Assembly: GCA_964247055.1 (NCBI GenBank)
Contig: OZ176054.1
Location: forward strand, 8,184,001-8,248,000
DNA length: 64,000 nt
Direction: 5' to 3'
Source of the DNA: Paragordius varius
Taxonomy: Eukaryota > Animalia > Nematomorpha
A program made the translations under genes and the position numbers. The notes under the pieces are model-generated. The model ran no database searches, had not been told where the DNA came from, and saw only the letters and a program-made list of their open reading frames with translations. Numbering within the stretch: the stretch's first letter is position 1; the number at the start of each line of letters is the position of its first letter. Shown here in pieces: positions 3,160 through 59,869 of this stretch.

Positions 3160-3570
3160 TCTATATATTTATAAAAATGAAAAATGCTGGCTTTGTGATC
3201 TGGTTCCGGAAAACCGGTAGACCCATTCAAATCTAAATGTCGAAAAAATATAATCATTAATGAATGTCCCGACAATAGCTTCGCCTTTTTTTGAATTAGG
3301 CCCCTAGTTCGGGCCTACCCCGTGTAAGAAACGGTTTTTTTGAAAATAGAAGTCCACAAAAATCGCGTCCAGAGACATTCCAAAACATGTTGGACCATTC
3401 GATTTCAAATATGATATTTTTTACTTTTTTTTCGATTGCGCCGAACATAGTCGGCTCGCTTTTTTAATTTGGGCCCTTTTTTTACCCGCTCCCCCCGTAA
3501 AATGCCATTTTTCCAAAAAATAAAGTCCACAAAAATAATTTATTGAATCTCTATTTTTCGCCCAAGGTAT
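3160..3570 (+). repeat. Dispersed repeat, copy 1 (5' end resembles non-autonomous Helitrons)
   Basis: Shares long collinear blocks with 14620-15020 (atctatatatttataaaaat, tcattaatgaatgtc, ccccgtgtaa, ttggaccattcgat, ttttcgattgcgccgaacatagtcggctcg). The a|TCTATATA start is Helitron-like, but no CTAG 3' end was found. Confidence 0.7.
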
Positions 3571-12000: not shown

Positions 12001-14561
12001 AGTTGGTCCTTTGACTTTTTTGTTTTGTTTTTAACTTTTATCAATCAAATCGTAAATAATTCATCTCTTTTATTATTTTTAACCTATTTTCTATTATTAA
12101 ACATAAATATTTAATCGATATCGACTTTTAATCTTTGAGAAACCGTATATCTTTATTTATTTCTTAAAATAATTTTGGATATTTATAAGATTTTAAAACA
12201 AGAAATGAAAAAATATATAAGTTTTCTGGGTTATTAATTAAATTTTTTTTATAATAAACATTTAAAAGTCAATGATTATGTTCAATTGAAAAAAAATAGT
12301 TTGAAACAAATAAGTGGTTAAATTTTTTATTTTTAAATGAATAAATATAAAATAAATAAAGAAAATTAGGTTAATAAATAATAAAATAAAAAAATAAATG
12401 CAAAATATGGTTGATCAAAATTTATAAATTTTAAGGACCAACATGAAATGTTCAAGGACCAACTTGAAGTGTTCAAGGACACTCTTGAAGTGCAAATGGT
12501 ATAAAATAATGGGTGGGCACTTTGTTTAAAATATAATTATGAAATAGATATGGTGACAAATTACTACTGTTTCGTTAGATAATTCAGAATTTTATAGATA
12601 TCAAAAAAATTATAAAACAAATAAATTTATATTTATGAAATAAATGCTGTGTTATATTAAGCATTTCCATAAAGTGATATAACTAAATAAAAAACTGAAA
12701 AGGATAAAATTATATTTTTAAAATTTACATGCTCACTGCATATCAAAATTAAAAGACATGCTGCAATTCATTTACCTAAGTTATTGTAGATAAGCTTTCA
12801 TTTTGACTCATAAAGTTTATTTTATTTAAGCAAAAAATTAAAAAATGGAATCAAGTGAACCTAATTTATGCCTTCTCTTTATGAATTCATCTTTTCGAGG
12901 ATCAAAAGCATAAACTGTGTGAGATTCATCAAAACTATCACTTGTAACCGTGGACACAATAGATGATGGCTTACTGGCTAATAGTGTCGTTTCTGTTTGA
13001 GCAGATTTCTCCAAAAAATTATTCTGAAATTCTGGCGTTATTATATTGTTCTCTTCAGTGACTTGTGGTGACGATTTTAAAGTAATAGTTTCGTGTGTGG
13101 GAACATTTAAAATATTGTCAAACGAGTTGTTTGATACAACTTTAATTTCTGATGACAAATTTGTCGTCGAAAACGTGGAATGTATATCGATTGGATTTAT
13201 TTCATGGGTAAGGTTACGGACATTATCATCTTTTTGTTCACTTGGTACAATAGTTTCGTTTTTTGTACTGTTTTTATCGGAAAAATCTTGCAAAAAACTC
13301 TATATTAACACATAAATATAGGAAATAAAATTATAGTTATTTTTGGGGCGTTTTAAAAAGATGACATTAAGTTTGATTCGTAACACTTAAAAAATAATTT
13401 TGTATAATATTACTTTTGCATCCAAATCAAAAACTTTTTCATTTTTGTGATTAATTTCAGAAGTTGGTGGATCTATTTTGCTCGAAAATTGTTCATACCT
13501 AAATTAAGTTAATATTTAGTAAATGTTATACTCTGCCCAAATATAAAATAATTTTTTCTCTCAATCATACCATTTTAAAAAATCCGCTTCTGAAAACTTT
13601 TTTTCAGGGCCATGTACTTTGGGGCATTCAGAGATTTCAACTTCGTTTGGGTTTAAAATTAATCTATTATTAAGTGTGTTTGAATTGTGTTCGATATATT
13701 TTCCAGTATCTTGGCTTTTCCCATCATAAACTCCGCATTCAAGTTTATAATCCTCATTAATTTCAATGCCTTCAGGTATAGCATCATCGTCAAACGCATT
13801 CTCTTCCGTTTTTTCAAAGGGGTTTTCAACATTTTGATCAAACCGATATCCTGAAACGATAAGAGCTGCTGTAGAAAATTTATCAGTCTTTTTGGGATCG
13901 TAATATATGGATGGATGTAACAAGGGTAATTTTGTATTAATTGTAAGAGATAATATTTTTTGGATGATTGCAAGAAATTTATTATATCTATAGGCATCTA
14001 ATACAAAAGCATCATTTGAGTATAGTGATTTGAGCAAATCAGCGTCACACAGCGTTGGAAAAGTTGTAAAACTTTTAAGATATTCAAAATCGTTTACAAT
14101 ATGGCGTATCCACATTTTGGAAAGTGAAATATCGCTAATTATATTTTCTAAATCAAATAGTGTGATATCATTTGTGTTCTCTAAGGAATGTAGATCATTT
14201 AAGAGTTTTATATTATCGAAATTAATAGCATATGTGAAAATTTCTTTCACCCATGCGTTACATAACGATTTAGTATCTTTTCCACTGATAAATAACTTTA
14301 ATAATGGCCACAAAGATATATTAATCAAATTTGTATCATGTGGTACATATATGATTTTATTTAAATACACTGCTTCAAGTCCTATGCATAACTAATATAA
14401 ATATGGGAAAATACCGAATTAAGTAAATCATGAATCGAAATGGGATCATTTAAATAATATTGATGGGTATCTGTTTTACTTTCTAAAATATTGACAATTT
14501 TTTCCAAATAATTTATAAGTGAATCTTTTATGAATCCATGGTGCGAGTTTAAAAATGTCAT
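7370..14561 (-). CDS. PLEKHM1: PLEKHM1-like protein (N-terminal RUN domain, C-terminal Rubicon-homology zinc-binding domain), multi-exon
   Basis: Exon 14415-14561 plus the exon from 14391 give IKDSLINYLEKI...NSLCIGLEAVY...SLWPLLK...KMWIRHIVND (RUN motifs). Exon 11408-11461 gives GLDLQDNVCANSLC. Exon 11090-11214 gives CHYDGFYYCMACHKDESSIIPSRVLLNWD. Further exons give VCCKH...RALRLFYFTYL, HLSEFYSIQEI, NHISKLCDHC...CIDC...CLTC. No PH domain was recognised, and some middle exons are unresolved. Confidence 0.82.
9671..10870. mobile_element. 1.2-kb fold-back (long-TIR non-autonomous DNA transposon) in a PLEKHM1-like intron
   Basis: Diverged inverted arms at ~9671-10237 and ~10284-10870, separated by a ~46-bp spacer. 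Termini are TTGTGTGCAA...TTGCACACAG, flanked by TA on both sides. Confidence 0.8.
11966..12499. mobile_element. MITE with TA flanks and 21-bp subterminal repeats (Tc1/mariner-like)
   Basis: TA|CCATTTGCACTTTAAGAGTGTCCTTGAACACTTCAAGTTGGTCC at the left end and its reverse complement ...GTGCAAATGG|TA at the right end. Three ~21-bp tandem units lie at 12433-12491. Confidence 0.8.
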
Positions 14562-14619: not shown

Positions 14620-15020
14620 CTATATATTTATAAAAATAAAAAATGGTAATCATTAATGAATGTCGCGACAATAGCCCCGCCCCTTTTTTGAATTAAATCC
14701 CCAGTTTGGGCCCACCCCGTGTAAAAAACGGGTTTTTTGAAAACAAAAGTCCACAAAAATTTGAGACAATTTTTCCGAAAACTTGTTGGACCATTCGATA
14801 TCGAATATGATTTTTCTTTAGTTATTTTCGATTGCGCCGAACATAGTCGGCTCGATTTTTTAACTTAGGCCCTCTTTTTACGCACTCCCCCTTAAAATGC
14901 CATTTTTTTCAAAAAAATTCACTCTTTTTACCCAATCCCCCATAAAATGCCACTTTTTTTAAAAAAAATTAAGTTCACAAAAATAATTTTTTTAATTTAT
15001 TTTGCGCCCAAGTATGAGAC
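14620..15020 (+). repeat. Dispersed repeat, copy 2 (same family as 3160-3570), just upstream of the PLEKHM1-like ATG
   Basis: Collinear similarity to 3160-3570. It contains an extra tandem copy of the tttacnc.ctcccc.taaaatgcca unit. Confidence 0.7.
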
Positions 15021-19921: not shown

Positions 19922-22900
19922 ATGGCAGCAACTTTAAAAAGAGAACACATTGACAAGCTTACGAAGATTATTAAGCGCTGGAATTCAGATAGATTAGATT
20001 TATTTGAAATTTCTGTACCAAATGAGGTGACCAATTTTAATAAACCCTTTTTATATTTGACTTTATTGCGGATATTATTTAGCTTTTACAGTAATATTTT
20101 CCAAGATATTTTTTACATATTTGTAATATATATTTAATTTTGGTATTACGTGTTTTTTGAAATACATTTAATTTTGACCACTTTGTTAGGAAATACTTAT
20201 ATGATGAATTATTTGAAATCATTGTTTGGTGTTGCATATCACACCTAATTGTCAGGGATTATACATTTATATGTCATGATAAAAAGTTGAATAGAATTGA
20301 TTTTGACAAAAATTATACCTATTTGATAAAAATATATAATTTTTAAGTATATTTTTACATAGACCATACCTTTCTCCTATTATTTGAAAATTTGATATTA
20401 CAAAAATTAATACGTACAAACTTTAATAATTTAATAATTGCTACACACTTTTATTTCCATCTCCTTTTGAATGAAATATTGACTAAATCTTCCAGGTCGC
20501 ATTATTGAATTTTGGTACGTTGTCCTGATTAATATAGACATAATTTTTTAGCAGGATATACAAATTTTTTTTAAACAGTTTTTACCCAAATATATCTGTT
20601 TAGTATTAATTAAAGTTTAACTTCTTTTGATTACATTTTTTCAAGTTTTGCATAAATAGTGTAGGGATTTTTTGCTTGCGTAATCACTGTGTATGTGTCT
20701 TATCTCCTTATCAATCTTTTATGCAAAAAAACCTATAAATTTTATGCTGTGCCTGCTTGCATTAAGGAAGAGAGATGGAATCTTTCTGTTATATAGTATA
20801 TAAAATAGGTAGGAAAAGCAAAGTTTTGGATTGCCTGATAATGATACTATTTAATAATTTAATTTTATCTATTCAATTCCATTCCATTCGTTTATACATA
20901 ATTTTTGAGCAATATTAATTGATTAATTAACATGGTTTTTGTTGTTTTATAAAACATATAGATACTTTTGTGTTTGCATTTATATAAAAATATTTTTTAA
21001 ACCACATTTATGGTAGGATTGCAAAATTTTGTTGTTTTTTGTTTTTCCTAAGGAGTGATTTATGCTCTGATTAACAAATTTTTCATTTACTTCCCTTAAC
21101 AAACTACAATTTATAAACTCACTACTCACTTTTTTTGTGTGTTTATTACAATAGTTACACAGTGTGCAACAAATTTACTCAAAACATCATACCTAGCTTA
21201 ATATAACCCTTGTGACATATACATCTCAAAAATATAAGGATAAAAAAAATTGTCAATGTAGAAAATTTTTTTTTCACTTTTTCCATATATGGATATATTC
21301 GGAAAAAATCAATTTATTTGCATAATACTTGATCAAAAATTATAAAACTTATATATAATATAAATAATATTAAATAAATATTATTTGCAAATTTTGGCTC
21401 AATATGAATGGATAGATTTAAAATAAACGTCAATTTATTAAATCCAACTAAATTTAGCCCTTTATATTAGTAACATAAAAAATACTTGATGAAAATCAAT
21501 ATAATATGCGCCAAAATTTAAGTTTAACTTTATATGTTAATATAAATATTACTTATATATAATAAAAATTAGGTTTTAACTAAGTTAAAAATTTTTAAAA
21601 TTTTTTATTTTACTAAAATAAAATTAAATTTTTTTAATATCAACTGTAATATAATCATGTCTGGTGATTATAAATATAACCATATGGATTTTTTTACCTG
21701 GATTTTTGAATTGTAGATGATATTGACTGTTGCTTTACCCTGATATGATGGTATATTTTATAATAATTATAGATAAATATATTTGGAATTTAGATATAAC
21801 ATTGAAAAACCAATGTAATCCATTGTGAAAATCATATTTTAAAGACAAACTTGCTAATCACAAGCAAACATCCACCAAAAAATTATATTTTGATACATTA
21901 TGTTCATTGTGTAATAAATTAATATATTTAATTTTTTTAATATAAAATTGTTTACTTGTTTTTATACGAATGTGGGCAAGGTCCATCCAAAGATTTCTAT
22001 TAGTTTTAATGTTGAGTTCTGCCAAAGAATTGGTTTCTCTTAAATTACCCATTCTAATTTAAATAAAACTCCTCCATAGATTGCTATTTTTTGTTATGTT
22101 GAGTTATGCCAGTATTCAGGCACATAATTATTTTAGGTTCATTTAGAAATGTAAAATTTAAAAATATCTTCTGAATACGGCCAGTTTTTTCTTGAATGAT
22201 TTTTTAAAAAACGGTTTATGGCAAAAGAAAGTGTTAACGAAGTATACATCAGTTTTACCAAAACTTGGGCTCTAAAAGCTTATTTATGGCCCTGAATTAT
22301 CAATTAAATTTTATGTCATACTTATTTTTAATATAAATGTCTGCAAGTTTTTATAGTTATAGTATGTTGCACGGTTCATGAAACAAGATTTTGCAGCCCT
22401 TTTAATTTTTTTTTGAATACCATTTCTTCAAATTCTTATATTTAAATCTTTTAAAAGGTGTTGATAATCATTTTATAAACTATTTTAATCGGGTATTTCA
22501 TGTTATTAATATTTTGGCTAAAAGACTTTCTCAATATCAAGAACTTTTTTAACGAGTTGAATTTCATATACCCGAAGTAGGATAGGTTGTTTGCGATGGC
22601 TTAAGAAGCAAATGAACCTAAAATAATTATGTGCCTGAATACTGGCATAACTCAACATAACAAAAAATAGCAATCTATGGAGGAGTTTTATTTAAATTAG
22701 AATGGGTAATTTAAGAGAAACCAATTCTTTGGCAGAACTCAACATTAAAACTAATAGAAATCTTTGGATGGACCTTGCCCACATTCGTATAAAAACAAGT
22801 AAACAATTTTATATTAAAAAAATTAAATATATTAATTTATTACACAATGAACATAATGTATCAAAATATAATTTTCTGGTGGATGTTTGCTTGTGATTAG

Positions 22901-25900
22901 CAAGTTTGTCTTTAAAATATGATTTTCACAATGGATTACATTGGTTTTTCAATGTTATATCTAAATTCCAAATATATTTATCTATAATTATTATAAAATA
23001 TACCATCATATCAGGGTAAAGCAACAGTCAATATCATCTACAATTCAAAAATCCAGGTAAAAAAATCCATATGGTTATATTTATAATCACCAGACATGAT
23101 TATATTACAGTTGATATTAAAAAAATTTAATTTTATTTTAGTAAAATAAAAAATTTCAAAAATTTTTAACTTAGTTAAAACCTAATTTTTATTATATATA
23201 AGTAATATTTATATTAACATATAAAGTTAAACTTAAATTTTGGCGCATATTATATTGATTTTCATCAAGTATTTTTTATGTTACTAATATAAAGGGCTAA
23301 ATTTAGTTGGATTTAATAAATTGACGTTTATTTTAAATCTATCCATTCATATTGAGCCAAAATTTGCAAATAATAATTATTTAATATTATTTATATTATA
23401 TATAAGTTTTATAATTTTTGATCAAGTATTATGCAAATAAATTGATTTTTTCCGAATATATCCATATATGGTAAAAGTGAAAAAAAAATTTTCTACATTG
23501 ACAATTTTTTTTATCCTTATATTTTTAGGATGTCTATGTCACAACGGTCATATTAAGCTTAATATAATATCCTGAGAAAATAAATACCCCCAATTTTGCA
23601 CACTGTGTTATAGGAATAAAATGTAAAGTCTATTCTTTTTAAAAAATTAACCAGAAAATTTTAGATCTAAACTAAAATTGTTTCATTTTTGGCATTTATA
23701 ACGTTTTAAAAAGCGTACTTTTCATATACCATTAACCAAATTATATGTTTTTTTTATAAAATAATTTTTATCTGGCAATTATCTCATCACATTTTATGAA
23801 ATTGTAAGATTATTGTTTTAAGTTGGAAAAAAATTTGAAATGTTTTAATTATTGCATTTATTTTTTAAAAAATATTTGAGAGCAGATTAGTAAATTTATT
23901 TATAGTTTTTGTACAGAGTTGAATATTTGAATCTTCTTAGTTAATTAAATATATTATTTGATTAGGAACTACTTAATAATTTTGCATTCAAATACGTACA
24001 ATGCATAATGCCTTATTATTATTATTATACCTAACCTTTTTTTTCAAAAAAAATTGTTGTATAATTAAAGAAGAATTTTAAACAGTAGTTATAGTTTACT
24101 AACCTATTTTACTTTATATATTATATTTAATATTCATATACAATAATTATTTTTAATAATACATATGAATAATGTTAAATACAATAGTTAGGAATTTATT
24201 TAATAGTCTGTCTAATGCATTTTTTGACAAAAAAACTTTTTCAAATGGTATGTTATCAGTTAAACAAATAGTAATAAATAATATGTCATTGTTTTCCGTT
24301 TTACAGTGCTACATAAAAATTAATGCTTTTTTTATTTTGTAAAAAAACTAAATTCTAAATATTTATAAAATTTGCATATAAATATATTTCGATGTACAAT
24401 TTTGTTTTTAAATTCTATATGTGTTGTAATGAAATATTGTTTTAATCCAGGGGTGTCAAACATATATGGCTTCCCAGGCCGCAGTTTACGATAAAAAATC
24501 GACACATTTGCAAAAATATGGGAAATACATATGAGTCTGTAATATTTATAATTTATTTTAACAATATTTGCTAGGTTATTGTTAAAATTTAGACAGATTT
24601 ATTTACAAAATTTGTTTGACAAAATCTATTTTAAAAAATTTTGTACCCGAAATTTCTCACGGGCCTCAAAAGTATTTTGGAGGGCCGCGTGTTGGACACC
24701 CCTGTTACCAACAGCAAAGCGTATAATATTCGTGTCCTTAGTAAAACTACGAATTTAACGTAATTAGGCTTAATTTTGATTATAATTGGACATTTCGGTT
24801 TTGTTAATTGACATAAAAGGGAAATAAATTTACCTGTTTTTTTGCCTCGTATAAGATTATTCGTTTTTATAAGTTATAATTATTAAATTGTGGAGAAAAA
24901 TACAGTATTAAAAGTCTCATACACGGCAATAGACATATAAGTTCCACTTTTAGCCATTTCGAAACCGAAATGGCCATTAATATCTCTCATTAGTATATGT
25001 GGATAATTAAACACTTTTTTTATTCACAAAAAAATTATTTAACAGTTTTTTTGTTAAAAACTTTAATTATCGCGTTTTTTAACGATCTCAGTTTTTAACT
25101 TCTTTTATAACTTAACAATTTTATAATTTAATGGTTTTGTGAATAAATTTTTTAATGTTGAATCATTGGCTCGTAAGTTGTACGTACTTTAATCAAAACT
25201 ATAAAAAAAAATAATTAAATTATTTCACACCTTTTGCTTTTGGTTTTCTCCATACATTTTGATAGCTTTGGTGAATTTTATTTCATTATTCCATTATTTT
25301 TTTGATTAAAGTTTTTTTATAAAATGGTCTAAGCCGCATTTTCAAACCGATTCTTACTGTTCACGTGCTTTTATTATTTATAAAACAACTAGATTAATTT
25401 TATTGGCCTAATCTAAAAATGTTTATGTTACAGTCATGTATTTGTTTTACAAAAAATTACTTTTTTCCGTTTAATGGGTATAAATATTTGGTAAAGAATG
25501 GAAAAACAAGAGCTCTATGGTATTAAAATATATCATATTCATCAAAAAAGTAAAAGGAGTGTGGGGAAAGGCGTCGGAAATCTTTGGTAAAAAATAAAAA
25601 TAAACTAACAACTAACCCTTCACTTATAATTATTGTATAAAAGGGTTGGAAAATCGTACAATTATAATTTTTTTGTTTTGATATGGGAACGATTTTAAAA
25701 GGGATATTCACGATAGATGCTATATTAAATAATCAATTTGATCCGATTTCGTTAGGAAGTAACCCTGGTATTGCGGGTATTTATATCCTTTATAATTTTA
25801 GATTCAGAATATGTTGACGCTGGTATAAGACAGACACAAAATTGTATTAAGGCTGGCAACGATGGTTTTTTTTCATTTAGACTTTAGGTGTTTATGAAAT

Positions 25901-28900
25901 CGACGGGAATGAATTGATAGTAGAGACTTGTCCTGGTGTCCTTGATAGTTTTTTCCCTTTATAATGTTAGATTCAGATTATGTTGACGAAAATATAAGAC
26001 CCACACAAAATATTGTGCCTGGCAACGATGGTTTTTTTCATTTAGACTTTAGGTGTTCATGAAATCGACGGGAATGAAAATATGAAAAATTCATTAAACG
26101 GTAGAGGAAAAAGAAAAAGTACCGTTTTTGTTAATTTTAGAATATCATTTTTGGTCAGATGAAAAAAAGGCTAAGGCGTACAAAATTTTCGGGAATCCCA
26201 GAAATCATGAATTATCGTCTCGTCATTTTGTAGATGATTTACACATGTCTATAAGTTCCATAAATGCTATGAGACGAAGCATGACTCTGGGAATAGAGAA
26301 AGAGCCATTAAAAAAGGGTAGGAAAACGAAATGCAATGAAGGTATAGTCAGGCAGGTCAAAACAATCCTCGATAGTGATTGTGGATTGACTGTCGATGAG
26401 ATTCTCAATAAAATACCTGCAGAATGCAAAATATCCAAAAAAACCTTATATAAAATATTTAAAATAATAAACTACACGCGCAAAAGGTTTAAAATAAAGC
26501 ATTTTAGGATGAAACGCATTCAGTTTGATAATATTATTTTATGAACGCTATATAATCAATATTCATTTTTTATGTCTTCCCTTAAATATATACACAGAGT
26601 TGATTACATCCTTATATTTTGTCCGTTATCATGTTTGTTTTAATTATTGTCATATCCTATTAAATAAATTTTAATAAATATTTTTTTACCTATATATAAA
26701 AATTAATATTTACCTGGTTAATTTGTTTAAAATAAAAATTTTATCGAAAAAATTAATATAAAATTTGGCTAAATTAACAAAAATATAACCATTCCCCTTT
26801 AACAATATTTTAAGATTTTCATTATTTGACCAAAGATTTCCGACGCCCTTCCCCCACACTTCCTTTAATTTTTTGATGAATATGATATGGTTAATACCAT
26901 AGAGCTCTTGTTTTCCATTATTTACCAAATATTTTTAACCATAGTAAATTTTTCATATAATAAAGTATAATACATGACTGTAATTTATATAAATTAAGTT
27001 TTAAACATAAAATACATGAGTTTTTTACTGATCACTTGTTAAACCAAAATCTTATATCGGCACCAACTGTAACATTTTTTTGTGTTTTTTTTCCGCTTTT
27101 TAGTATGGCGAATTTTTTGGGGTGATGCGATTTTACTTCCAGGAGGAAGGGGAAAAGGTTGCAACCAAATGTATTCGAGTCACAAGTACGGCCACAACTT
27201 TACACGTTATCAATACGTTGATTGAAAAATTTAGGCCTGACATGAGATTATTGAGTCGCCCGGCTTATGCACTGTACGAAGTCCATATCAATGGAGGTAG
27301 TTTTTAGTTTTAGTTTTTAAAAAACTACTTTTTGAAAACAAATTTTAAGGTTTTTTTTTCGCTCAAAGAGTTACACTCTCCCCAAAATATCTAAACAGTA
27401 AAAAGCCGTATCATGGCTTACAAAGGTCTTTTATATTAGTATAAATGAGTGTTAGCTAGTATAGGCAATTTTTTGGTTTTTTCCCCATTCAGAAGATTTT
27501 TGGAATCAATAATATTACTCTTGTTTTTAATTTTAGTATTTAAATATATGAATATAAATATAGCCATAAAATAGCCTTTTTAAAAAAGTAAGTCCATTTC
27601 AAAGATACCCCTAATATGTACAACGGAGCAATTATATTTATTTAAATAAAATGCGGTAAAACCAAATTATGGAATGTTTTTAATATTTTAAATATCCAAT
27701 TATACTTTATTTTTTTATTGTAACAAAGGAGGTTGGTTGCCTAAATTTTTTTCGCCTTCTGAACATAGAGAAAGGCTTATAACTTTTGATTTTGCACAAA
27801 TATTCGAAAATAAATATTATAAAACAATTTGTAAAATTAATTGGTAGTATTAATAAAATATTCATATAATTTTGATATAGATGAACGGAAACTGGACGAC
27901 GATGAAAAACCTCTTTTGGTTCAACTGCATTGGAATAATGATGATAGAGAGGGTCGATTTTTGTTAAAAAGTGAAACGGATAGACATAAGGTACCTTATA
28001 TATGATTATTGGGAATATTTAAAAAGAATTAATTAGGGACTATATCAAAATCTTTAATGTTTGTTATAGTAAAGTGATAATTACATTTGAATGATTGGGT
28101 AAAAATTCTATTTGTATAATACATGTGAGATAACACCGTTGCGGACTAATCTTAATTCATAAAAATATCTAGTTTTTGTTTAGACATTATCGTTCTTTTT
28201 TTTAAAGCATTAAAATAAATTTTGGCTACTATAAAAACTGATATAAAAGGCGAACAATAAAATAGCTCATAAAGCGTCTAAATTATAATCGCATTTGATA
28301 TCCCGTTGGGACCTTAAAAGTTTTTTATATAAAAATATAAATTTATCGCAAAAATAGTCAAACAATGGTTTATACTATCGTGGTCCTGACATCAAAACCT
28401 CAACCATCTCAATAGATCCTAATTATGGCAATAATATGAATTATACGGTTGGAGGACAGTATGTTGGTTTTGAAGGCAACACATATAATCGCGAAAACTA
28501 TTCTACGAGAACCGCTTATGAAGTAACTAATAATAATGGGCCCTTCTCTCCAAAAGCTAACCACAACAATATGAATTTGAATATGATGACTAATGGTTTT
28601 GCAACTATCGGTGGTTATCACACTCAAACCCAAAATCAAAACCAAAATCATGATAGTGTATGTGGAAGTATTAATGAACATGAGGATAGTATATACAGTA
28701 CGAATAGTAGTAAATTTGGGGCCAAGGGTAACGCCAAACAAACCAAAGAGAAAAAGAATAAAAGTATTTTTTTTATTATGTCATTTGTGCCAAAGAAATT
28801 GAGAGTTTTGAGTTTTTGGAAACACTTTCGAATTCGTTTTATCTGTAGAATAAATTTTTTATTTATGATAACTCATTACATTACAGTATTAAAAGCTTCT

Positions 28901-54255: not shown

Positions 54256-54470
54256 CAGTCATGTATACTTTACTTTATCAAAAAATATTCTTTCGTTAAA
54301 TGGGTAAAAATATTTATTAAAACAAGAGCTCTATGATATTAACAATATCGTATTCATCAGAAAAGTATAATTGCAATAGAGCTCTTGTTATTTCCATTCT
54401 TTACCAAATATTTATGACCATTTAACGAAAAAAAAAAAAAAAATTTGATAAAATAAAGGATACATGACTG
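54256..54470. mobile_element. 215-bp MITE derived from the 25431-26980 Tc1/IS630-like family
   Basis: Same termini, TA|CAGTCATGTA...TACATGACTG|TA, and the shared TIR core (aacaagagctctatg, catattcatca). Confidence 0.85.
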
Positions 54471-55800: not shown

Positions 55801-58800
55801 TTATAATGTGGATTGTAGCTGATTCAATGTAAAAGCAATGGCATCTCTGATATCCTTAGATTTTTGCAAATTTGCATTCGCGTAATTCTGTATACTTGCC
55901 AATATTTGATCAGATTGATCCGCGTGAAAACGAGAAAACTGTAGCATAAAAATGTAATACATGAAAAAAAATAAAATATTATAGGTTGTTATAAAATGTA
56001 TGTTATTACAGTCAGGTACCCTTTATTTTATCAAAATTTTTTTTCTTTAAATGGGTATAAATATTTGGTAAAGAATGAAAAAACAAGAGCTCTATGGTAA
56101 TTCTTATACATTTTTTGATGAATATGATATTGTTAATACCATAGAGTTCTTGTTTTTTCCATTCTTTACCAAATATTTATACCCATTTAACAAAATAAAA
56201 TATTTATAGGTTGGTTTTAAAATGTATGATATTAAGTATATATTACTTCTTTTTTGGCTGTTTCAGAACATTCTTGTAAATTCTTTTCAGCAAATTGTCG
56301 TATTTGTCGGGCCTATAAAAATGAAAAAAATCCACCATGATTAACAAACAGTTTTATATAAAATGGTCAAATATTTTTGAACCATTCATGGAATAAAATA
56401 TATACTTTATAAAAATAAGTATAAAACTCTTACATATTCGCGTTTGTTAGGTTTGGCTTTTTCCAATGCTTTGTTACAATTTTCAAATTCGAGTAATAAA
56501 CAATTTCTCCGATTCAAGGTGTCCTAACCAAACGATAAAATATTTATTTTATATGTATATACCTATATTTTTTGTTACGTAAAAGTTATTTAAATAAATC
56601 TTTGATATGGTTTGACACATCTAATCATTATTATCCAAAAACAGTTTTTTTAATTTACAAAATCCTTTTTTTATGTAAACAAACAATTAACATTTTAATT
56701 TAACTTTTTTAACTAAAAAAATATGATACATACTTTGTGAGATTCCATATAACGACAATAAAAATCTAGTTCAAATCCAAGCGTTAATTGGTAATAAGCC
56801 TGTAGTTCTTCATTTTTTTGCTGAAAAATAAAAGAAATCGATTAAATAAAAAAAATCGCCGTAAAATATATAAATAAAAATATTACCTTTAAATTTTCCA
56901 TCAAATTGCCAAAATTTTGCAATGTCCTAAGATTAAAATTAAATTATATATCATATAATAAATTCCTTTGATGGTATGATGATTAAAAAAAATTATTCAA
57001 AAAAATAAAGTATTTACTGATTAAAATCAAGATATAAGGTAGGGCCTTTACAGTGAGCCATTGATAATGTGGTTGAAAAATGACCACATATTTGAGCCAA
57101 TTCTAAAAATACAGGTTAGAAGTTATCATTGATTATATTATGAAAAAAGAAAAAACTTAAAAAAAAGTAATAATTACGATATATGGATTCGACTTTTTTG
57201 CTGAAAGCCTATAATAAATGATAAAAAAATAAATTATATCATTTGGCCAATATTAACAACAAGGCTAAATCCGAAAAAATTAACTTGTAAAGCATCTCTT
57301 AAAAGCGCACTGTATTCCACATTCCATGTACGCTCATGTTGAAAGAAATCGTCAAATTCCTATATATATATTTTTTATAAGCGTTATATAATAATTATAA
57401 ACTTACCATTATTTATTAATTTACAAGAAAATAAAAGACAAATTAATTCAAGACACAAATAAAAATTGTTATATCTTACAGCTTGATGGGCTTTGCGCAT
57501 TTCAGAAACAGCAGTGGTAAAACGATCCAAAAATCCCTTTTTAAATTTTCCGTGTGGCGGAGCCTATATATTTTACGATTATTAAATTTTCAAAGGAATG
57601 CGTGAATAATTTGTAAAAATAAATTAAATAATACATTCTTTTCCGTAAGAAATCTTTTCAAAGTGACATCTGATCCGAAAATTGGGTGTTGCAAAAGCAG
57701 CAAGAGATATCTGATAATATGAATTAAAATTTAAACCTTTTTATATTACAATATAAATATTAAATATTTATATTTAAATAGTTTGTATAATCAATAATTA
57801 CATTTTATTGTTATCTATGTTTAAGAATAAGGTATTAACAGTTGATATAATGTAAAATCTAATTACAATTGGAATTTGTGATATTATATTATTGTATAAA
57901 CTATATTTCTATAATTATCCAATGTTAAAGTTTGATAACTTAGATCCCAAAACAAGTAAATAATCTTAACCAATTATATTTTTTGTAATATGAGTTATAA
58001 ACATATGGGTATTAAAGTTTTTTAATAAAAATTAAATAGTAAAATGAGTCAAACCATATATTTTAAAACCGAACCTTTCCAAATTAAAGCAATCATAGTT
58101 AAAGGAATGATGAATGTGCTTGAGAATGGCATTGTCGTAGGGGGACCGAGCCAATGATTGATCAGTAACTAAAAAACGGTATTTTAATCATACTTGGAAA
58201 AACAGGCATATTTTTATTTTATACAAATCGTATTGTTGGCGTTATAAAACATTTAATTGAATAATGATTTGTCGTTTAATATTAAAGTTAAACAAGAAAA
58301 CTTTTTGGTTTTTAGTAACTAAATAATTGAAATTACTTTGGCACAAATAATATGGATAAGATAATATAAAATATTAGGCATATAAATTGACTGATTATAA
58401 TGATTAATATAAGAAAAATTAAACGTTTTCGATATGCTTTGCGATTAAAGATTATTGTTAGCGACATAAATTATCGATATAAATATCCAAGTAAAATCTA
58501 GATACAATTATAAATTTGGCTTAGGGAAAGAAAAGATTTAATAAAACCTAATAAACGTAGTGCCTTGTTAAATAATCATAATATCAAAAATCATTGTAAC
58601 ATCTATATAACAAAAAAGAGATACCAATAAAATTGGTATTGTTTGCATTGAAACCATTGTTAAGATTGGCGTTTGGATGGGTTATTTTACCCAACCCATT
58701 ATTGTTTGATGATGTATCTCCAGAATTTAATAATCCATTAACGTTGCTTTCAGAAGTGTGGGATGTGGATTGAGAGCCTATTCAAAAAATAACTATTATA

Positions 58801-59869
58801 TATAAAAATATTCGCAATTTAATGTTAGATGCATTGTCAAAATTAGCATAAAAGCAAATTTAATAATTGTATACAAAAATTATACCAGGAGGAACAGATA
58901 AATTTGGATTGGCATTTATAAGATGGAAAGATTCAATCGGTTTGGTTGGTAGTGGAGGAATCTATTTATTATATAATATATTAGAAAAGGTAAGAATATA
59001 GTTAACCGTAACTCATAAATTTTTTGATAAAATTATTTTGTTTAATCGAATTTTCGAAACCCCATCAATAAGCAAAAAGTGCTTATGGAGTAAAATTGTT
59101 GGCGGTAAAATAAAAAAATAGTGTAAAAGAGGGACATTCTCTATGATAATAAACACCATATCGAACTATTTATTTATTTTAAAGAAATTAATAGATAAGA
59201 TTAAATTATTCAAATATAAAATATGCATGAAACAAAAAGCCACCTAAATATTGTATGAGCAATATAATTAATGCATACAATAAGCCCAAGTGCTTTGTTT
59301 TGAGTTAGCAAGCAATGATCTAGCCATTCAATGTCCTCATGATATCGGTCAACAACAAAAACATCTTTTCTGCCAAACTTCTAAACACTTATACATAAAC
59401 TAAAACCTTTTGAGAACGTATCGTATAAAGAATTTTATTTGACGGTGCATTAGCTATATAACTTCCATTGCGAGATTCAGCATCGTTGTAAGAACCTGAA
59501 AAAAACAAAATTAAAGAGGGCTAATTTACCGTATTCAGAAATGGTTTCGGCTCTATCGTTTACACTGATTCGCACAACCTGAATATAATATTTTGAGGTT
59601 AATGATTTTGTTAAATCTTCTAACGGTGCAACATCCGGTCTTTTATCAACGTAATCATTTTCACTGGATGATTCCTCATCATTTTTATGGGCAGATCCAT
59701 TTAGCCCATTAGTTTCACCGGTGGCATTAGATAACACTTTTGCTTTATCTACAGGAATATCTAATTTATATGAAGTAATCAAACTATTAGCATTGTTTAT
59801 GCTTTGTTCAGGTATTTCATCAAAAATGTCAGAATCTGAATCATGGGTGGCTTCACTTTGTTGATGCAT
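55801..59869 (-). CDS. PX-BAR sorting nexin, SNX5/SNX6/SNX32-like, multi-exon
   Basis: Hand-assembled exons give PX motifs (VDRYHEDIEWLDHCL, IIPPLPTKP, ERYLLLLLQHPIFGSDVTLKRFLT) and BAR motifs (EFDDFFQHERTWNVEY, LGFELDFYCRY, DTLNRRNCLLLEFENCNKALEKAK, CSETAKKEF). The stop codon is at 55801-55803. The 5' end and the first junction are uncertain. Confidence 0.85.
56009..56200. mobile_element. Second MITE of the Tc1/IS630-like family, in the last SNX intron; right end degraded
   Basis: TA|CAGTCAGGTA start, followed by both TIR cores in inverted orientation (atgggtataaatatttggtaaagaatg...cattctttaccaaatatttatacccat). Confidence 0.75.

Follow-up and report, generated by a model that had tools for sequence, protein, structure and literature searches.

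Can a transposase gene of an animal carry introns of 22–25 nucleotides (nt)? The question is raised by a 1550-bp transposon copy in the horsehair worm Paragordius varius, found in a stretch of 64,000 nt (contig OZ176054.1, positions 8,184,001–8,248,000 of the forward strand), which as a whole is called the window below and is numbered from its first letter. The coding frame of this element, which lies within the first intron of the afadin gene, is broken at five places by T-rich segments that begin with GT and end with AG. The best explanation, and in our opinion a probable one, is that the element is a non-autonomous, internally deleted copy of the Tc1/mariner type whose half transposase gene holds five genuine GT–AG micro-introns. 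As judged from their sequence, the five segments themselves are very probably real tiny introns.

Structure of the Predicted Spliced Gene

The gene model lies on the plus strand, begins with an ATG at 25683, and comprises six exons of 94, 63, 60, 60, 66, and 404 nt. Exon 1 (25683–25776) is separated from exon 2 (25802–25864) by micro-intron 1 (25777–25801; 25 nt, 56% T). Micro-intron 2 (25865–25887; 23 nt, 61% T) precedes exon 3 (25888–25947), which is followed by micro-intron 3 (25948–25970; 23 nt, 57% T) and exon 4 (25971–26030). Further, micro-intron 4 (26031–26052; 22 nt, 59% T) leads to exon 5 (26053–26118), and micro-intron 5 (26119–26140; 22 nt, 55% T) leads to exon 6 (26141–26544), which ends with TGA and encodes a putative bipartite helix-turn-helix (HTH) region of an IS630/Tc1-type transposase. 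With these lengths, all five introns are in phase 1, and all internal exons are multiples of three. Excision of the five segments joins the ATG at 25683 to the 134-codon exon 6, giving a stop-free coding sequence of 747 nt (248 codons). There is no TAA or TAG in frame within this spliced open reading frame (ORF), and thus the ORF of the element uses the standard code.

In the unspliced sequence, the coding frame shifts in the order 0, 1, 0, 2, 0, 1, and upstream of 26098 the open stretches span at most 44 codons in any frame. If micro-intron 5 is kept, the HTH exon itself lacks an ATG upstream of 26245, and initiation there would cost part of the first helix-turn-helix. Translation must therefore begin further upstream, either at 25683 or at least at 26083, where exon 5 bears an internal ATG followed by the basic stretch GRGKRKK.

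The segments have the features expected of GT–AG introns: GT and AG ends whose excision restores a continuous frame, a pyrimidine-rich body (55–61% T), and a motif resembling a branch site. The latter (TTTAT, TTAAT, or TTTAG) is situated 7–12 nt upstream of the AG in all five segments and may serve in branching. A preliminary description of this DNA, made from the letters alone, had proposed five T-rich GT..AG segments of these positions and lengths, all in phase 1, whose removal leaves an uninterrupted ORF running into the HTH region; direct reading bears out both points. The sixth candidate that it named, 26487–26507, is indeed in frame, but it is A-rich and superfluous to the frame.

Tests against Chance

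The arrangement was compared with two kinds of control by means of a dynamic-programming test that asks whether a region can be crossed without a stop when at most five GT..AG pieces of 20–30 nt are excised. Among 2000 dinucleotide shuffles of the region 25683–26140, only 12 were crossable, which puts the chance at no more than 0.6%. None of the 2000 was crossable when the excised pieces had to contain at least 50% T, a figure that is biased, as shuffling breaks T-rich blocks. The real-DNA control comprised 1903 pieces of 458 nt from both strands of the window, each lacking an ORF of more than 45 codons. Only one other locus among them was crossable, and at excision lengths of 22–25 nt the element stood alone.

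Composition and coding signal agree with the proposed boundaries. The T content falls from the values given above for the five segments to 20–33% in the six exons, and the change occurs at the GT and the AG. A codon-position nucleotide model was trained on 3169 codons from long host ORFs of the window, and all six exons score best in exactly the frame demanded by the splicing model. Exons 1–4 reach 3.7, 4.8, 4.1, and 4.9 bits, respectively; non-coding 62-nt pieces, each taken in its best frame, have a 99th percentile of 3.65 bits. The weakest score, 1.6 bits, belongs to exon 5. Taken together, the chance controls, the switch in T content, and the frame-specific coding signal make a chance arrangement of the five segments and the frame unlikely.

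Internal Duplication

Part of the gene is duplicated in tandem. The stretch 25787–25913 (127 nt) is repeated as 25956–26078 (123 nt) with 87% identity and a start-to-start distance of 165–169 nt. The duplicated stretch begins 10 nt into intron 1 and ends 26 nt into exon 3, so that exons 2 and 4 are partners, micro-introns 2 and 4 are partners that differ by one T, and the initial 26 nt of exon 3 recur in exon 5. Micro-intron 3 looks chimeric: its 3′-terminal 15 nt match intron 1, and the 8 nt at its 5′ end are similar to those with which intron 2 opens.

The partners differ in length by 25 versus 23 nt and 23 versus 22 nt in the introns, and by 63 versus 60 nt in the exon, where a single in-frame 3-nt indel is present. 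Substitutions number 10 in 60 nt between exons 2 and 4, one in about 37 nt between the introns, and one in 26 nt between exons 3 and 5. The tiny introns are thus better kept than the exon 2/4 pair, which fits the idea that nearly every base of such an intron is a splicing signal, the numbers being small. The preliminary description had reported a tandem duplication of about 170 bp; the duplication is real, but the repeated unit is 127/123 nt and not the full 170 bp. Its statement that the duplicated introns differ by 2 and 1 nt and the duplicated exon by 3 nt agrees with the alignment. The further suggestion that the duplication may be used as a control for selection on the spliced product turns out to be weak, as it amounts to three indels together with substitutions that carry no sign of purifying selection.

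Element Ends and Relatives

The assignment of the element to a transposon type is based primarily on its ends. The element spans 25431–26980 and was read directly with a TA on either side. The left TA target-site duplication (25429–25430) is preceded by gtt and followed by CAGTCATG, with which the left terminal inverted repeat (25431–25592, plus strand) begins; the right terminal inverted repeat (26825–26980, minus strand) ends with CATGACTG, immediately before the right TA (26981–26982). Both termini are of the CAGT type. The inverted arms, ~160 nt each, consist of several pairs of segments that are 90–100% complementary (about 88–93% over ~160 nt), and a blastn comparison of the element with the window gave 88% identity between the left and right arms over 130 nt, with gaps. 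Every arm contains two similar direct repeats of the TTTGGTAAA type about 96 nt apart, located in the left arm at 25482–25504 and 25578–25600. The TA duplication, the CAGT ends, and the ~160-bp repeats with their direct repeats are hallmarks of Tc1/mariner-type transposons, and by its ends and repeats the element is a cut-and-paste DNA transposon of the IS630–Tc1–mariner type.

Between the left repeat and the gene, a candidate TATA box, TATAAAAG (25637–25644, plus strand), lies about 40 nt upstream of the ATG and might belong to a promoter of the element. Downstream of the gene, the place of the catalytic domain is empty: the AT-rich remainder 26545–26824 is non-coding, and no ORF was found in it.

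Two relatives resembling miniature inverted-repeat transposable elements and consisting of terminal repeats only are present in the window. The copy at 54256–54470 is complete, with 215 bp running from CAGTCATG to CATGACTG between two TA dinucleotides, while the copy at 56009–56205 has its right tip cut off. These miniature copies indicate that the transposon family was once mobile here. Words nearly identical to the ORF region of the element occur in four sequencing runs of one species label and in one run of a second label; runs of further labels hold only words of the element from outside the ORF region.

Encoded Protein

Exons 1–5 encode 115 residues with a repeated module, DS[ED]YVD...GNDGV[YH]EIDGNE, and exon 6 encodes 133 residues. 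In a protein-language-model atlas, the ten nearest clusters listed for the exon 6 product are all HTH clusters, eight of them IS630, PAX, HTH_23, or HTH_28 (score 0.94), and the shared features number only 159–167, which is typical of distant relatives. A HMMER search against 1.84 billion representative proteins returned two weak matches, labelled P0001 and P0002. The former is an Ig-repeat protein, and the match has been rejected as spurious. The latter (E 3.4e-4, 37% identity over 83 residues) is a weak match between two sequences that are both AT-rich. P0002 corresponds to the N-terminus of a transposase of IS630/Tc1-like type; it matches HTH_11, HTH_28, and HTH_Tnp_Tc3_2 and bears the motif ..FIDATGFNL.. 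after the HTH, where the catalytic domain starts. It is encoded on the metagenome contig L001 (1–935), in which TAG is read as sense and an upstream ORF contains a 25-nt GT..AG intron (~126–150); this contig is probably a ciliate Tc1/IS630-like element. No match to the exon 6 product was found in a word-index protein search, in a scan of metagenome contigs, or in the PDB searched by sequence. A single-sequence AlphaFold (AF2) model of the product has a predicted local distance difference test score (pLDDT) of 63.5, with a confident three-helix unit at residues 60–116. Exon 6 may reasonably be regarded as an IS630/Tc1 HTH region, but sequence alone does not prove it, most weight being borne by the element ends.

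The alignment with P0002 also indicates where the gene has been cut. In it, the ORF ends (26544) just short of the point where P0002 enters its first catalytic strand, and only about 280 nt of non-coding sequence separate this end from the right repeat. A DDE/DDD catalytic domain, otherwise a feature of Tc1/mariner transposons, is missing from the element. The element therefore belongs to the family by its ends, but as a deletion derivative it is not autonomous, and its gene product could not mobilize any DNA. The transposase gene announced by the preliminary description is supported in that exon 6 looks like an IS630/Tc1-type HTH region (atlas clusters, P0002, and CAGT ends next to TA), but it is truncated and has no DDE part.

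Candidate Micro-Introns Elsewhere in the Window

Two segments that look like the micro-introns of the element link open frames in host DNA, both on the minus strand. At 14392–14414, a candidate T-rich phase-0 intron of 23 nt would connect a 49-residue exon starting with ATG (MTFLNSHH...) to an exon of 276 codons. At 59381–59406, a candidate phase-0 intron of 26 nt would connect exons of 29 and 34 codons, and the 34-codon exon would run up to a GTATGC donor at 59278. Joined, these two exons give 63 residues that looked PX-like by eye; Pfam gave no PX match, and the assignment is unsupported.

These look-alikes bear on the origin of the micro-introns, for which the preliminary description had offered two possibilities, an ultrashort-intron class of the host and arrival from a foreign organism. 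A host class is favoured over a foreign origin; it has the two candidates in the window in its favour, but confirmation by homology came out blank (see below). The window has a GC content of 22–33%, and DNA transposons are abundant in it, in agreement with the published genome of Gordionus, which has 26.9% GC and 63.8% repeats with DNA transposons as the largest class (10.1101/2023.06.26.546503). A literature search for intron sizes in horsehair-worm genome papers gave no statement.

Proposed Explanation and Observations Weighing against It

It is supposed that a Tc1/mariner copy inserted in the sense orientation into the 7.1-kb intron 1 of afadin. The copy would keep the 5′ half of a transposase gene, that is, the HTH region and, ahead of it, a family-specific N-terminal part composed of 60–66-nt exons that include a partly duplicated module. 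This half-gene would be broken by five U2-type GT–AG micro-introns of 22–25 nt, which appear compatible with the host rather than bearing a foreign signature, and two of the five would stem from the internal duplication, which would have copied intron, exon, and intron as a block. Transcription from the TATA-like promoter of the element and full splicing would yield a 248-residue protein capable of DNA binding only, which could bind the repeats of the family and could not cut DNA. Retention of any single intron would lead to a premature stop, and retention might have a regulatory role.

A more specific version, in which the micro-introns arose and were multiplied as blocks inside the transposon after its entry into the lineage and hence represent recent intron gains, is doubtful. 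If it were true, copies of different age with or without the introns would show the making and fixing of introns of 22–25 nt.

A number of observations weigh against the proposed explanation. First, the boundaries are not unique: 120 combinations of 18–34-nt excisions at the five places restore the frame. No such combination has fewer than five excisions, and the set adopted here is the sole uniform one (22–25 nt), with equivalent sites in both duplicate units. Second, almost every difference between exons 2 and 4 alters an amino acid, so that the comparison gives no sign of purifying selection there. Third, the protein evidence is sparse, as Pfam, apart from a weak match to a winged helix, assigned the exon 6 product to no family at E ≤ 1, Foldseek with the low-confidence model of this product gave nothing below E 0.5, and protein searches found no homologue of exons 1–5. 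In addition, no second ORF-bearing copy was found in the window or in the protein and contig collections, and hardly any words of the element are present in the RNA runs that carry the same species label, in which the element may not be expressed.

The remaining points concern the host. The homology searches meant to confirm the two host candidates were all blank: the exons flanking 14392–14414 and 59381–59406 had no match in Pfam, the two short exons had none in the PDB, and no homologue was found for the 276-residue exon. Scans of the window for GT..AG segments that connect open frames, with minimum frame lengths of 30 or 20 codons, showed either no enrichment or at most ~1.8-fold enrichment over control dinucleotides, T-rich segments being present at only ~1.8 times the control rate. 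With so little enrichment, the window alone is unable to establish a host class of micro-introns.

Alternative Explanations

The competitor that survives best, an unlikely one all the same, is that only micro-intron 5 matters. The protein would then start with the ATG at 26083 (MKNSLNGRGKRKK-, followed by the HTH), the upstream part would be a 5′ leader, its T-rich blocks being spliced or not, and its continuous frame would be partly luck. This ATG is in frame and, together with a basic stretch, lies 36 nt upstream of intron 5, and such a product would be similar to ordinary Tc1-type transposases, which begin at the HTH. The absence of homologues of exons 1–5 and the mostly amino-acid-changing differences between exons 2 and 4 would also be accommodated. 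However, a mere leader does not account for the host-like codon-position signal of exons 1–4, which appears in the required frames and above the non-coding 99th percentile, or for a stop-free crossing of all five places that is rare by chance.

It is rather improbable that the element is simply dead and its introns fortuitous, the T-rich blocks being small insertions or products of slippage in an old ORF and their GT and AG ends accidents of AT-rich DNA. The copy is not young, given that its repeats are only ~88% alike, and the deleted catalytic domain, the ambiguous boundaries, and the little enrichment in the window-wide scan would suit such a history. Against it, all five breaks are bridged by GT..AG pieces of 22–25 nt in one and the same phase, at a chance of no more than 0.6% and with about one other such locus per window; the change between T-rich and T-poor sequence is sharp where the segments begin and end, and the duplicate introns have diverged less than the duplicate exons.

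Transduplication, in which the 60–66-nt exons with their micro-introns were captured from a host micro-exon gene and fused in frame to the HTH, is improbable to a still greater degree. On this view, the introns would have come along from the host gene and would not belong to the transposase gene. The internal exons are modular and all symmetric (phase 1–1, multiples of three), and exons 1–5 lack a transposase homologue; but nothing like the DSEYVD..GNDGVYEIDGNE module occurs elsewhere in the window, and intron 5 is situated where the HTH proper begins.

It is very improbable, and not needed, that the element came horizontally from a ciliate or another organism with tiny introns and that its introns are those of the donor. 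The one hint in favour of such an arrival is a weak one: P0002, to which the HTH exon has its sole sequence homology among the 1.84 billion representatives, comes from a ciliate-like 935-bp metagenome contig. Against it, the similarity to P0002 is low (37% over 83 residues, both AT-rich), the spliced ORF is in the standard code, the family has miniature derivatives in the window, and words almost identical to those of the element are found in runs of several related labels.

Relation to Known Systems

An intron in a transposase gene of this type has a well-studied precedent. Tc1 of Caenorhabditis elegans has a single 41-nt intron that must be spliced before the transposase can be translated; most Tc1 RNA is unspliced, and somatic factors hold splicing down (PMC12632400). 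The same work cites P-element intron 3 as the classic case of splicing control (PMC12632400). Like Tc1 and Tc3, the element described here has a TA duplication, CAGT-type ends, a putative N-terminal HTH region, and, very probably, short introns in the transposase gene. Unlike Tc1, it would have five of them, only 22–25 nt long, which share phase 1 and all precede the HTH, and it has no DDE domain. To our knowledge, its extra N-terminal part of about 115 residues is absent from Tc1.

As to intron size, a survey of 51 metazoan genomes found introns shorter than 30 nt only in myxobolid myxozoans and in Dicyema japonicum (PMC13644364). Both lineages are parasitic and have compact genomes. Like them, the element would represent an animal case of GT–AG introns within the range of 22–27 nt. 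In myxobolids and Dicyema, short introns occur throughout, with medians of 22–27 nt, whereas here the afadin gene has introns of about 100 to 7100 nt, so that the tiny ones would make up a class of their own next to long ones, and their carrier is mobile.

Two further systems resemble the element in its architecture. The KP-type repressor of P elements is internally deleted and still encodes the DNA-binding end, and such products can compete for element ends. The element has likewise lost the catalytic part and keeps an ORF for the putative DNA-binding N-terminus between intact ends, in a different superfamily. Sleeping Beauty is a Tc1-like element of the inverted repeat/direct repeat (IR/DR) type, with long terminal repeats containing direct repeats; the ~160-bp repeats with two direct repeats per arm are of the same design, without sequence similarity.

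An intron in a Tc1-type transposase and its control by retention are thus already known. The novelty lies in how small and how numerous the introns of this mobile element are, in their presence in an animal genome that is rich in repeats and has long introns nearby, and in the duplicated intron–exon–intron block. If the proposed explanation is true, this genome would represent a third and different animal case of introns below 30 nt, one in which they stand beside kilobase introns and are carried by transposons too. Datable transposon copies would offer a handle on when tiny introns appear, duplicate, and vanish. Gene finders and ORF-based repeat annotation could wrongly call such transposases or host genes broken or missing. 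The worth of this particular copy is limited by the loss of its catalytic domain.

Setting in Afadin Intron 1 and Other Repeats

Afadin exon 1 (MAATLKREHIDKLTKIIKRWNSDRLDLFEISVPNE) is located at ~19940–20015, and the first exon of the RA domain at 27104–27296 (Pfam RA, E 1.7e-6). The element sits in the intron between them and is oriented like afadin, which agrees with the preliminary description. The gene continues to about 49600 with introns from ~100 nt to 7.1 kb (after intron 1, up to 5.7 kb), and the earlier remark that host introns are typically 60 nt or longer holds locally for afadin.

Intron 1 of afadin also harbours a large foldback, with arms at 21173–22144 and 22610–23581 that are 972 nt each, 98% complementary, and separated by a 465-nt loop. 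Elsewhere in the window, related open frames at 3300–3520 and 14630–14865, on both strands, encode similar peptides (..FFENRSPQKSRPETFQN.. and ..FLKTKVHKNLRQFF..) and probably belong to another repeat family.

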